A stretch of 64,000 nucleotides of DNA from contig OU015568.1 in NCBI GenBank assembly GCA_907165135.1, forward strand, positions 4,402,001-4,466,000, in the 5' to 3' direction. The stretch is from Oikopleura dioica. Its lineage: Eukaryota > Animalia > Chordata. Position numbers and translations under genes: made by a program. Shown piece by piece: positions 11,249-18,039 of the stretch (the stretch's first letter is position 1; every line of letters begins with the position of its first letter). The notes below the pieces were generated by a model. That model made no database searches, was not told the origin of the DNA, and was given only the letters and a program-made list of their open reading frames with translations.

Positions 11249-13386
11249 ATGAGTGATCGATTTAAAATAGTCGAGAGATTGCTGAGCCTTGTTACTTTTG
11301 CTTTGGTCTTGTTTTTGGCGATTTATTTGCCTTTAAATTTGGAAAAATCGGTCGAGAATGAAGAGAAAGTGGAAGTTGAAGATTCCATTGGTAGAGTTTC
11401 AGAAACCGCTGGGCATTACAAACACGCCGCTGTTGCTACAGACAGGTACTGTAATGACCATGATAACTTACTGACTCTTTTCTTAGCGCGCTTTGCTCCG
11501 GGCTTGGTAAGAAAATCCTAAAAATGGGAGGTAATGCCGTCGATGCAGGAATCGTTTCCGTCTTGTGCCTTGGGCTCCAGAATTTCCACTCTTGCGGGAT
11601 AGGTGGGGGTTCGTTCTTCATGGTTTACAACGGGCTCGAGGATCAGACATTTATCAATTGTCGAGAAAAAGCGCCAGCAGCGGCGACGGAAAAGATGTTT
11701 TTTCAAAATCCAGGAATGATTTCGAAGGATCTAGAATTTCTTTTCACTTCTTTGATATCATAAATAGAAAACTCCACATATGGTGGCCTGGCGATCGGCA
11801 TTCCCGGCGAAATGGCCTGTCTTTCCGAAGCTCATGATCGCTACGGCTCCCTCGACTGGTCCCTCCTCATCGGCGAAATCGTTACTCTCCTCGAGGACGG
11901 AATCATTGTCACCATCACCCAAGAAGGCCCGTTAAATTCCCATGCTGAAAAGTGCTCGAACGCGGAAATGTTCTTCAACGAAGACGGTCAAATCAAAAAA
12001 GCTGGAGATGTCATTCACAATCGAAAGTTGGCCGACACTTTCAGAAAAATCGCAAAAGACAAAAAATCCTTCCACAAAGGCTCTCTCGCCCAGGACATCG
12101 TCGACGACATCCAAGATAATAACGGGATCATAACTATTGAAGATCTCACTTCTTTCCAGCCGAACATTGAAATTCCCCGAAATGTGGATGTCGGAGATTT
12201 GAGATTCTACATCCCATCCGCGCCAGCAAGCGGACCAGTTTTTCAGTTCATTTATAATATTTTTGCGAATTTCGATGAAAGTGGAGATTTGCCTGTGGAC
12301 TCGGTTGATTTCAATCATAGATTAGTAGAAGGTAAATCCTCGAAATCATAAGAATCGACAGTAAATTTATGAGAAGAAATGCTCAATGAGCACAATAAAA
12401 ATAGTTAATTCGACTTGATAATCAAAAAAATGAGTCCTTTATGAAGATAAAATTCAGTTTTCGGAGTAAAACATGCTTGTTATGGTCTTTTTTAGCCTTC
12501 AAATTTGCGTACGGAAAACGATCAGCCCTTGGCGACCCGAAATTCATCACCAACCAGACGACTCTAGAAATGCTTGCCAATCTTCCAACGATGGAATTTG
12601 CCAAGGCTTTTAGTGAAAAAATTGATGACACAACTCATCCTTTGGAGTACTACGAGCCCGAGTTTGAAATCATAGAAGACTCTGGTACCTCCCACATGAG
12701 GTTTCTTTTCTGAAGTAGGCCAAAAGATAATCGGATCAAATTAAGTATTGTCGACGAAAACGGAATGGCTGTAGCAATAACGAGTACAATCAACACCTAT
12801 CTCGGGTCAAAAATGATCGGAAAAAGAACTGGAATTATTTTCAACAATGAAATGGACGATTTTTCAACTCCCGGTCAATCTAACAACTACGGTCTTCCCC
12901 CAAGTCCTTCCAACTTTATCAAGCCCGGTGCTCAACCTCTCAGCTCAATGTGCCCAATTATTGCCGTCGACAAGGTACCGACCCCTCAAATTCCAGCCTT
13001 TTATTCTCTAGAAATCCGGTGAAGTCATTTTCACGGCTGGAGCTTCCGGCGGATCGCAAATTACAACTTCAGTGGCAAATGTCGCTATACGAACTCTTCT
13101 TTATGGAGATGGCCTTGATGAAGCCATTCAGCGAGCAAGAGTGCATCATCAACTTTTGCCAAATGAAATCAGAAAGGAAGACAGATTCGATTTGAATCTG
13201 ATCGCAGAGCTGGAGAAAAGAGGTCATCTTTACTACCAAGGCACTGGCAGAGGAGCTGTTGTTCAGGTGAGACTATAGAGAGACCCTTATATCTTCAGAG
13301 AATTATTTTAGGGCATTCTCAGAAGAAATGGAATTCTAGAGGCTGTATCAGATGTTCGAAAAGGCGGAAAACCTGATGGATACTGA
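11249..13386 (+). CDS. GGT: Gamma-glutamyl transpeptidase (type II membrane, T3 Ntn-hydrolase), multi-exon
   Basis: N-terminal TM; AAVATD; GGNAVDA; [10 protein letters not shown]; NCREKAP; [10 protein letters not shown]; [11 protein letters not shown]; GTSHM-S-IVD with the catalytic Thr; [10 protein letters not shown]; [11 protein letters not shown]; PLSSMCP; GASGGSQIT; RVHHQLLP; [12 protein letters not shown]. Confidence 0.97.
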
Positions 13387-13738
13387 AAATACAAGATTTA
13401 ATTTCCTGATGGATATTTTGCAATAGAATTAAGAACATTTCAATTTGTCTTGAGTTGAATTTTATTTTTATAAATAGGTAATAGAATAGGCATAAAGTTG
13501 CAGCTTTTTTGTAAAGTTCAGAAGAGTTTTTGTCAGTCAAGAGGCTGAAATACAGGTAGATTAGATTCAGAGTTGCTTAGTTTATGTACAAAATGGCTTT
13601 TCGTTCGTTGTTGCTTAGGAGAGACGAGGCAGAAATGAAGCGAGGGACTCGGACGATTCGAGTTTGGCGATTTTCGGAACACTTTCCTCAGAGTAGTCGT
13701 CGTAGTAGGAGTTGGCTTCTCGCTTGCAACCAACGCTC
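12771..13738. repeat. Direct repeat copy 1 (GGT 3' exons + shared 3' region + T-box terminal fragment)
   Basis: Aligns end to end with 17093-18039, apart from substitutions and a small indel in the intergenic part. Confidence 0.95.
13614..13738 (-). pseudogene. Isolated copy of the last ~40 codons of the T-box gene
   Basis: Minus strand reads [40 protein letters not shown], identical in protein to the end of the ORF at 17916-18149. No upstream T-box exons adjoin it. Confidence 0.8.
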
Positions 13739-13911
13739 TACAAACTCACTTCAAAATGCTCGTCGGTAAGATCGTTAAAACGAACCCAAAAAGCGGAATC
13801 AGAAGAGTTTTATGATCTGCGCGTAAAACCGGCGAATCGAGCATCATTTCAAAAATAAACTACTTTTCTTGTTGATTATTATTTCTTTCGAGAAATCATA
13901 ACAAACAGCTA

Positions 13912-17007: not shown

Positions 17008-17092
17008 GTGGCAGGTGGTAGGACAAGTGAAAGAAGCAGATTTACAAAAAAAGGGCTAAGACTTGGCAAATGTAAAGAGTTACTGCGACATT

Positions 17093-17703
17093 ATAGTAAT
17101 CACCAGTACAATCAATACCTACCTCGGGTCAAAAATGATCGGAAAAAGAACTGGAATTATTTTCAACAATGAAATGGACGATTTTTCAACTCCCGGTCAA
17201 TCTAACAACTACGGTCTTCCCCCAAGTCCTTCCAACTTTATCAAGCCCGGTGCTCAACCTCTCAGCTCCATGTGCCCAATTATTGCCGTCGACAAGGTAC
17301 TGACACTCGAACTTCAGATTCTTACTCTCTAGAAATCCGGAGAAGTCATTTTCACCGCTGGAGCTTCCGGTGGATCGCAAATTACAACTTCAGTTGCAAA
17401 TGTCGCTATTAGAACTCTTCTTTATGGCGATGGCCTTGATGAGGCTATTCAGCGAGCTAGAGTGCATCATCAACTTTTGCCAAATGAAATCAGAAAGGAA
17501 GACAGATTCGATTTGAATCTGATCGCAGAGCTTGAGAAAAGAGGTCATCTTTACTACCAAGGCACTGGAAGAGGAGCTGTTGTTCAGGTGAGACAATAGA
17601 GAGACCCCTTTACACAAAATAATTTGAGGGTATCCTACGAAGAGATGGAATTCTAGAGGCTGTGTCAGATGTTCGAAAAGGTGGAAAACCTGATGGATAC
17701 TGA
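17093..17703 (+). pseudogene. GGT: 5'-truncated duplicate of GGT (light-chain region only, three exons); pseudogene or alternative 3' cassette
   Basis: Starts at [11 protein letters not shown], after the catalytic Thr exon. Both introns, their splice sites and the stop codon (17701-17703) are intact. Confidence 0.75.
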
Positions 17704-18039
17704 AAATATAAGATTTTTTTCCTGATGGATATTTTGCAATAGAATTCATTTTACTGGAGTTGTATTTTATTTTTATAAATAGGTAATAGAATAGGTATAA
17801 AGTTGCATCTTTTTGTAAAGTTCAGAAGAGTGTTTGTCAGACAAGAGGCTGAAATACAGGTAGATAATCAGAGTTGCTTATTTTATGTACAAAATGGCTT
17901 TTGGTTCGTTGTTGCTTAGGAAAGACGAGGCAGAAATGAAGCGAGGGACTCGGACGATTCGAGTTTGGCGATTTTCGGAACACTCTCCTCGGAGTAGTCG
18001 TCGTAGTAGGAGTTGGCTTCGCGCTTGCAACCGACGCTC
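17093..18039. repeat. Direct repeat copy 2 (GGT 3' exons + T-box 3' end)
   Basis: Matches 12771-13738. Confidence 0.95.

Follow-up and report, generated by a model that had tools for sequence, protein, structure and literature searches.

A direct repeat of just under 1 kb, whose two copies are designated R1 and R2, brackets a kinase-like gene (gene X) in the 64-kb window, i.e. the whole stretch of DNA analysed here, which is located on C1 of the Okinawan Oikopleura dioica reference OKI2018_I69 (64,281,565 bp in 19 pieces). Each repeat copy contains the 3' ends of two convergent host genes, a gamma-glutamyltransferase (GGT) gene and a T-box gene, both of which are present in full, and a truncated second tail of each lies beside the insert. 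R1 and R2 differ almost exclusively at silent sites, and the conclusion that both copies hold sequence shaped by purifying selection holds strongly. The insert derives from a large family of kinase-like genes, its ends being unique breakpoints within a longer unit. We tentatively attribute this arrangement, with somewhat less than even confidence, to a real, microhomology-mediated duplicative insertion in which the two repeat copies represent allelic versions of working genes.

The repeat and its host genes

Aligned to each other, R1 (12772-13738) and R2 (17094-18039) span 967 columns, 888 of which are identical (91.8%), with 58 mismatches and 21 gap positions. They recur with a period of 4322 bp, which amounts to 3,831 bp without a miniature inverted-repeat transposable element (MITE) nested in the insert. 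According to a search of the 64.28-Mb assembly R1 and R2 are the sole two copies; this and all further genome-wide copy counts refer to this one haplotype-merged assembly, in which exons were searched singly rather than as joined spliced proteins. GGT is present in one copy besides a 37%-identical paralog, and no other close copy of the T-box gene was found genome-wide.

The initial annotation of this DNA had described direct repeats with the 3' ends of two convergent genes on either side of a middle gene, in the order full GGT gene and T-box tail, middle gene with adjacent MITE, GGT tail and full T-box gene. Repeats and layout are both borne out by the R1/R2 alignment and by the Pfam matches to GGT on the plus strand and to T-box on the minus strand (Table 1). 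The truncated GGT tail lacks the exon which harbours the catalytic Thr, and its splice sites are intact. The last exon of the T-box gene (18149-17916) extends into R2, the last intron of this gene being a phase-0 intron. In the full GGT gene the second intron (~11718-11768) has no GT near its 5' end and is hence non-canonical; the reading frame demands its removal.

Table 1. Features of the repeat locus, with positions in the window (UTR, untranslated region).
Feature	Position	Strand	Remarks
Intact GGT gene	11249..13386	+	Three exon pieces match Pfam PF01019; frames and stop codon read
GGT, last three exons	12746-12975, 13012-13266, 13312-13386	+	Wholly or partly inside R1
R1	12772..13738		Functional GGT tail, common 3' intergenic/UTR stretch, truncated T-box tail
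Tract identical in R1 and R2	12801..12946		147 nt between neighbouring differences
Truncated T-box tail	13615..13738	-	Last 40 codons and stop; amino acids as in the functional tail
Filler at left junction	13739..13756		18 nt
Captured segment of kinase-like family unit	13757..17093	+	~2.85 kb without MITE; unique breakpoints
Gene X, coding sequence	13912-16304	+	5 exons, 735 codons open
MITE	16525..17007		In 3' flank of captured unit; missing from paralogs
R2	17094..18039		Truncated GGT tail, common 3' intergenic/UTR stretch, functional T-box tail
Truncated GGT tail	17094..17703	+	Exon pieces 17094-17297, 17333-17587, 17629-17703
Intact T-box gene	17916..20235	-	Pfam PF00907; open reading frames read

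Silent-site divergence between R1 and R2

R1 and R2 were compared by codon and by exon over 216 codons (648 coding nt), and 28 synonymous as against 2 non-synonymous changes were counted. This corresponds to an overall synonymous divergence (dS) of 0.21 and a non-synonymous divergence (dN) of 0.004. Within GGT, the 67 codons of the partial exon A contain 5 synonymous changes and 1 non-synonymous change (A/V, in the codon touching the junction), the 85 codons of exon B 12 synonymous changes and no non-synonymous one, and the 24 codons of the last exon, C, 6 synonymous changes and 1 non-synonymous change (N/D). The 40 codons of the T-box tail differ by 5 synonymous changes and none that is non-synonymous, exactly as initially counted; for the GGT parts, the 23 synonymous changes and the N/D exchange had likewise been recorded correctly, but the A/V exchange beside the junction had been overlooked, so that the count of a single non-synonymous change does not stand.

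The null hypothesis of one neutral lineage for these substitutions is rejected with p = 4e-10. There is no indel in the 648 coding nt versus at least 5 indel events in ~290 non-coding nt, and both GGT introns have retained GT..AG boundaries in R1 and in R2, in agreement with the earlier statement that the splice sites are kept. Neutral decay of the truncated tails is bounded at at most about 1%, the simulated probability being 0.09 at 1%, 0.002 at 2% and 0 at 5-10%. Together with the test against neutrality, these simulations uphold the proposal that the truncated pieces have been shaped by purifying selection.

Non-coding positions of the repeat differ at 28 of 288 sites (9.7%), the introns by 0.17-0.26. 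The spacer between the two stop codons (228 nt; 13387-13614 compared to 17704-17915) shows a divergence of 5.7% as opposed to 17-26% in the introns and 21% at silent sites, which suggests constraint on overlapping 3' UTRs. The divergence is unevenly distributed: an identical run of 147 nt has a probability of 0.002 under random placement of the 58 mismatches, and we regard 12801-12946 as a tract of recent conversion or of shared ancestry. Of the five differences in the 13 codons adjoining the right junction, four are synonymous (P about 0.016 under randomness). Junction-associated mutagenesis as the source of these five differences was rejected because of this very proportion.

Gene conversion as the source of the silent-site bias was rejected as well, by reasoning rather than by data. 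Conversion from a working copy removes synonymous and non-synonymous differences alike, while conversion into a working copy would be selected against, with the result that non-synonymous differences would last longer; moreover, conversion at a frequency that matters would also have erased a dS of 0.2. With conversion ruled out, the silent-site pattern implies that the tails either are translated or belonged to working genes up to the very recent past.

The insert junctions

The target duplication abuts the insert at both ends. R2 begins at 17094 in direct contact with it, and R1 ends at 13738, 18 nt ahead of it. At the left join the sequence of R1 (...AACGCTC) is followed by the 18-nt filler and then by ATGCTCGTCGG, the tetranucleotide GCTC being present on both sides of the filler. 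At this join R2 continues with GCTCGGGTCGG and the insert reads GCTCGTCGG. A local template for the filler was sought, with chance k-mers as the only yield. At the right join the trinucleotide TAG is common to the insert, to R1 and to the paralogs of gene X. Both junctions are microhomology joins. O. dioica is described as lacking classical end joining, breaks being repaired by microhomology-mediated joining instead (Deng et al. 2018, as referred to in PMC11067885). The repeat scan of the window revealed no inverted repeats at the ends of the insert, which is not a transposon.

The history of the reference requires that an assembly error be considered. OKI2018_I69 was derived from one heterozygous male with ~3.6% k-mer heterozygosity; a 99.3-Mb diploid draft, 1.5 times too long, was built with Canu from reads of 840 bp median length, and its haplotypes were then merged by HaploMerger2. 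In an assembly with this history it is conceivable that no haplotype contains R1, gene X and R2 in succession and that allelic copies of the repeat were set in tandem by assembly or merging. Assemblies of this type commonly contain false allelic duplications (PMC9516828), and a divergence confined to silent sites is the pattern of alleles. Yet the hallmark of these duplications in PMC9516828 is a gap, and there is no N anywhere in the 64-kb window and consequently no gap between R1 and R2. Furthermore, 3.3 kb of real sequence separate the copies, both junctions display the microhomology and filler typical of repair, and the join of gene X to R2 must exist in some molecule. Given the gapless sequence and the biological look of both junctions, the structure is unlikely to be nothing but an artefact of assembly, and we concede only a very slight chance to this reading. 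Haplotype mosaicism of the HaploMerger2 reference is a live explanation for the divergence of R1 from R2.

Each breakpoint carries an AG, as had been pointed out initially (TTATAG at 17091-17096; TTTGTAG on the minus strand at 13744-13738), and on this basis the two truncated tails had been proposed to serve as alternative 3' cassettes. As far as anatomy goes, this proposal suits one of the two genes. In the T-box gene, the junction creates a candidate acceptor, TTTGTAG/AGC, that would preserve the frame if joined to the phase-0 donor of the last intron, at the cost of 37 skipped residues. In GGT, splicing from the natural donor at 12699 to TTATAG/T would break the frame. A further AG in CACCAG/T at 17106 is in frame, yet its use removes 12 residues after the catalytic Thr.

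Gene X and its family

Exon 2 of gene X matches the protein-kinase domain PF00069 in Pfam, whereas searches of Pfam and of PDB sequences with the putative protease half gave no match; of the initial designation as a kinase-protease gene, the kinase part can therefore be retained. The gene is a member of a family that has >130 matches across this genome, its nearest relatives (85-89% identical in DNA) being located on C2 at 11.6-12.7 Mb. The insert is homologous to these paralogs over 13757-16524 and again from 17010 to ~17090, ending ~300 bp beyond the stop codon of gene X. The paralogs are still homologous to each other past both insert ends, which identifies these ends as unique breakpoints within a larger unit rather than as termini of an element. 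Termini common to the copies, such as terminal inverted repeats, long terminal repeats or fixed ends, are lacking.

Homology to the paralogs begins exactly at ATGCTCGTCG/GTAAG (13757-13766), which resembles an ATG-containing mini-exon with its donor; the ATG is out of frame with the main start of gene X at 13912. Breakpoints of genome scrambling that coincide with exon starts are reported in PMC11067885, and the breakpoint of the insert behaves likewise. Exon 4 of gene X contains a tandem 51-nt (17-codon) repeat of 73% identity (15797-15898). At 16490-16503, just upstream of the MITE site, a 7-nt duplication (GTACACT within GATGTACACTGTACAG) distinguishes the insert from all compared paralogs.

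The C2 clade is star-like. All pairwise DNA distances fall between 0.10 and 0.137, and the terminal branch of gene X (0.080) is as long as those of its paralogs; no close source copy of gene X is found among the sampled copies. Across the C2 subfamily (gene X at 13757-16304 and loci L004-L012) dN/dS amounts to 0.36-0.53 and the frames are open. Many copies of this subfamily arose at about one time and have been kept since. An unselected copy with a branch length of 0.080 would hold ~9 stop codons; gene X is intact over its 735 codons and has hence been a working gene.

The initial annotation had also suggested a mobile cassette which carries its own copy of the target. As stated, this suggestion is not supported, as R occurs nowhere else in the genome, the breakpoints are unique, and bracketing direct repeats are absent at 9 of 11 paralog loci (flanks of 1.1-1.5 kb). 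At L013 a repeat is present that does not abut the unit. L010 was considered as a second case and rejected: its bracketing repeat of 1.2 kb is the spacer of a head-to-tail array, in which the next copy follows, and has no recognisable host-gene content. The accompanying proposal to inspect the paralogs for flanking local duplications thus yielded, beside the nine loci without any, one other family member, which lies between duplicates of an H2A gene.

This second member is found at C2:11647422-11652214 on the minus strand, between two same-strand H2A genes. The upstream H2A (histone fold at 11651368-11651628) has a divergent H2B partner (11651969-11652214), while the downstream one (fold at 11647521-11647796) has none; the family gene between them extends from exon 1 at 11650509-11651012 to the last exon at 11648171-11648467. 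The H2A genes are spaced by 3,847 bp, a period nearly equal to the 3,831 bp measured here without the MITE, and the layout of target, insert and target is the same. We regard this locus as a lead, not as a result.

Two explanations draw on this parallel. In the first, a circle composed of the gene X segment and the 0.97-kb target piece would have integrated by a single crossover within R (ends-in or Campbell-type), and the family would spread by such integrations, with 0.6-1 kb of target duplicated at every one of them. The arrangement R-X-R is the exact product of ends-in integration, the two junctions then being the ligation joints of the circle; it would seed (spacer-X)n arrays like that at L010, and the near-equal period at the H2A locus is in line with it. 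The uniqueness of R, the unbracketed paralog loci and insert ends which are not common termini all speak against such a circle, for which neither a recombinase nor an att-like site was seen. Furthermore, a circle with homology to its target integrates only at its locus of origin, which leaves the spread to new sites unexplained. We consider this explanation quite improbable. In the second, the family spreads by DNA-level insertion that duplicates 0.6-1 kb of target, R-X-R seeding head-to-tail arrays; the event at the R1/R2 locus would date from the family burst (dS about 0.2), with selection having preserved the two truncated tails as translated sequence from then on. This explanation, which counts R1-X-R2 and the H2A locus as two loci with target duplication, appears distinctly unlikely to us.

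The MITE mentioned beside the middle gene in the initial annotation is confirmed by its 8-bp target duplication (GTGGCAGG at 16517-16524 and 17008-17015) and by its absence from the paralogs; it arrived after the insert. It is dense in palindromic motifs of the GCGCACGC/TGCGCA type (61 inverted-repeat pairs within 570 nt). The nearest relatives of the MITE (C5:994662 and C4:14008756) are only 91-93% identical, which points to a small family that has not been active recently.

Origin and age of the two repeat copies

According to the explanation that we favour, a break in the last T-box exon would have been healed in one step by error-prone repair, with no transposon involved. About 2.85 kb would have been copied from a member of the kinase-like family, starting at the ATG-containing mini-exon and ending ~300 bp past the stop codon. 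Synthesis would then have re-entered the locus 0.97 kb upstream, within a GGT exon, whereby the common tail region came to be present twice. Both host genes would have remained intact, each leaving its truncated tail beside the insert. The two copies could have become allelic versions by either of two routes: the homologous chromosome may have served as template for the second copy or have exchanged sequence with it later, or the merged reference may be a composite to which one haplotype contributes a repeat and the other the insert together with its own repeat. The layout, the joins, the family from which the insert comes and the selection pattern are shown by the data; the succession of template switches and the allelic origin of the divergence are inferred.

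On the favoured reading the silent-only differences between R1 and R2 are those between two allelic versions of working genes, so that one common cause would cover both tails at once. Four synonymous differences out of five beside the right junction are to be expected for sequence taken from an intact allele, and the mosaic distribution of the divergence, including the 147-nt identical tract, fits recombining alleles. Of the options raised initially, two diverged functional haplotypes are thereby best supported, albeit in modified form: simple unequal exchange does not account for microhomology junctions around a copied paralog segment, which call for template-switch or end-joining repair.

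Several observations weigh against a recent event between alleles. The dS of 0.21 is several times the genome heterozygosity of 3.6%, so that the alleles would need to be unusually deep. As gene X lacks a close source copy in the assembly and has a terminal branch of 0.080, a recent event would require that the segment was moved rather than copied or that its source resided on the discarded haplotype. In addition, the divergence of R1 from R2 (dS 0.21, non-coding 0.097) is on a par with that separating gene X and its paralogs (dS 0.18-0.28, non-coding ~0.09); an old in-place event predicts this match, which we have to call a coincidence. Finally, a search of a 5.8-billion-protein collection, in which Okinawan data seem to be absent, with the open reading frame across the R2 junction did not retrieve an intact R2-type GGT allele. 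The best matches (P0001-P0004, 74-87% identical) stem from other appendicularian lineages and have an R1-like structure.

The agreement of the two clocks would follow directly if the locus had been created by one event in cis dating back to the time when gene X separated from its paralogs, and if both tails had been kept by direct purifying selection as translated sequence. In this case the normal donor would be spliced to the T-box tail as an alternative last exon, for which the in-frame acceptor TTTGTAG/AGC is suited, and the GGT tail would be trans-spliced or translated in a downstream frame from the ATG at 17136, which follows TTATAG in frame. The preserved splice sites, the lack of coding indels and the long terminal branch of gene X, with no recent source copy, agree with such an age. 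The difficulty is that two unrelated fragments must have become useful at once, although their products, being identical or nearly so to the normal proteins, offer no obvious gain. The GGT fragment is devoid of the exon with the catalytic Thr, and splicing from the donor at 12699 to TTATAG would shift the frame. Signs of selection are likewise seen ahead of the candidate ATG, where the codons show 4 synonymous changes to 1 non-synonymous. We therefore hold an old event of this kind to be unlikely, if worth serious consideration.

Strong purifying selection on both copies could also be reconciled with the absence of deep alleles if the GGT/T-box pair had been duplicated in tandem long ago, both pairs working for most of the time since, and if the inner 5' parts had been deleted recently with capture of a family member, or an older and longer insert had been trimmed from both sides. 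Since the paralogs reach past both insert ends, these ends could be deletion scars, and the junctions resemble microhomology end joining. No remnant of the missing 5' parts is present, however, and neither GGT nor the T-box gene has another close copy in the genome. Two recent deletions would be needed, or a recent capture of gene X in spite of the missing source copy, and a redundant pair evolving at a dN/dS of 0.02 over a dS of 0.2 would be unusual in a compact genome. This course of events seems improbable to us.

What emerges is a puzzle of timing. A recent event explains why the tails have not decayed, but it needs deep alleles together with a source of gene X that was moved or not sampled; an old event in place explains the match of the clocks, but it needs selection at the protein level on both tails throughout.

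Significance and comparison with known systems

If the arrangement is real in cis, it constitutes a clean natural example of break repair in a chordate without classical end joining, in which a whole gene was copied from another chromosome, the homologue was re-entered and a kilobase-sized duplication arose while both host genes stayed intact; it would then possibly represent an elementary step of the genome scrambling described for O. dioica. If the divergence stems from haplotype merging, the locus is a warning for a widely used reference, as alleles stitched together can pass for local duplicates 'under purifying selection'. Whichever reading is true, the silent differences between R1 and R2 are ready markers for telling the copies apart.

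A transposon with target-site duplication shares with the present locus an insert between direct duplications of its target, and the nested MITE with its 8 bp is an ordinary example. The duplication around gene X, in contrast, comprises 967 bp, and the insert has neither terminal repeats nor termini in common with other copies. Ends-in (Campbell-type) integration likewise produces the order target, insert, target with direct repeats as long as the homology. Unlike in such systems, no circle, recombinase or att site was found here, the breakpoints are unique and lie within a larger genomic unit, and a circle could not have reached new loci. Heterotype false duplications (Ko et al. 2022, PMC9516828) resemble the locus in that two diverged allelic versions stand side by side in a haploid reference and in that these versions diverge as alleles of working genes typically do; they differ from it with respect to the missing gap, the real gene between the copies and the repair-like junctions.

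The closest parallel is provided by tandem duplications with templated insertions, as they arise from microhomology-mediated break-induced replication, template switching or synthesis-dependent microhomology-mediated end joining. The present case departs from them in that the insert is a whole functional gene of 2.85 kb, and in that selection has shaped the 8% divergence between the copies, a pattern that no event within the same molecule can produce at birth; the switch to the homologue is a step that we infer here. What is shared is a duplication that abuts an insert copied from elsewhere, microhomology of 2-5 nt, a short filler between repeated tetranucleotides and a host without classical end joining.

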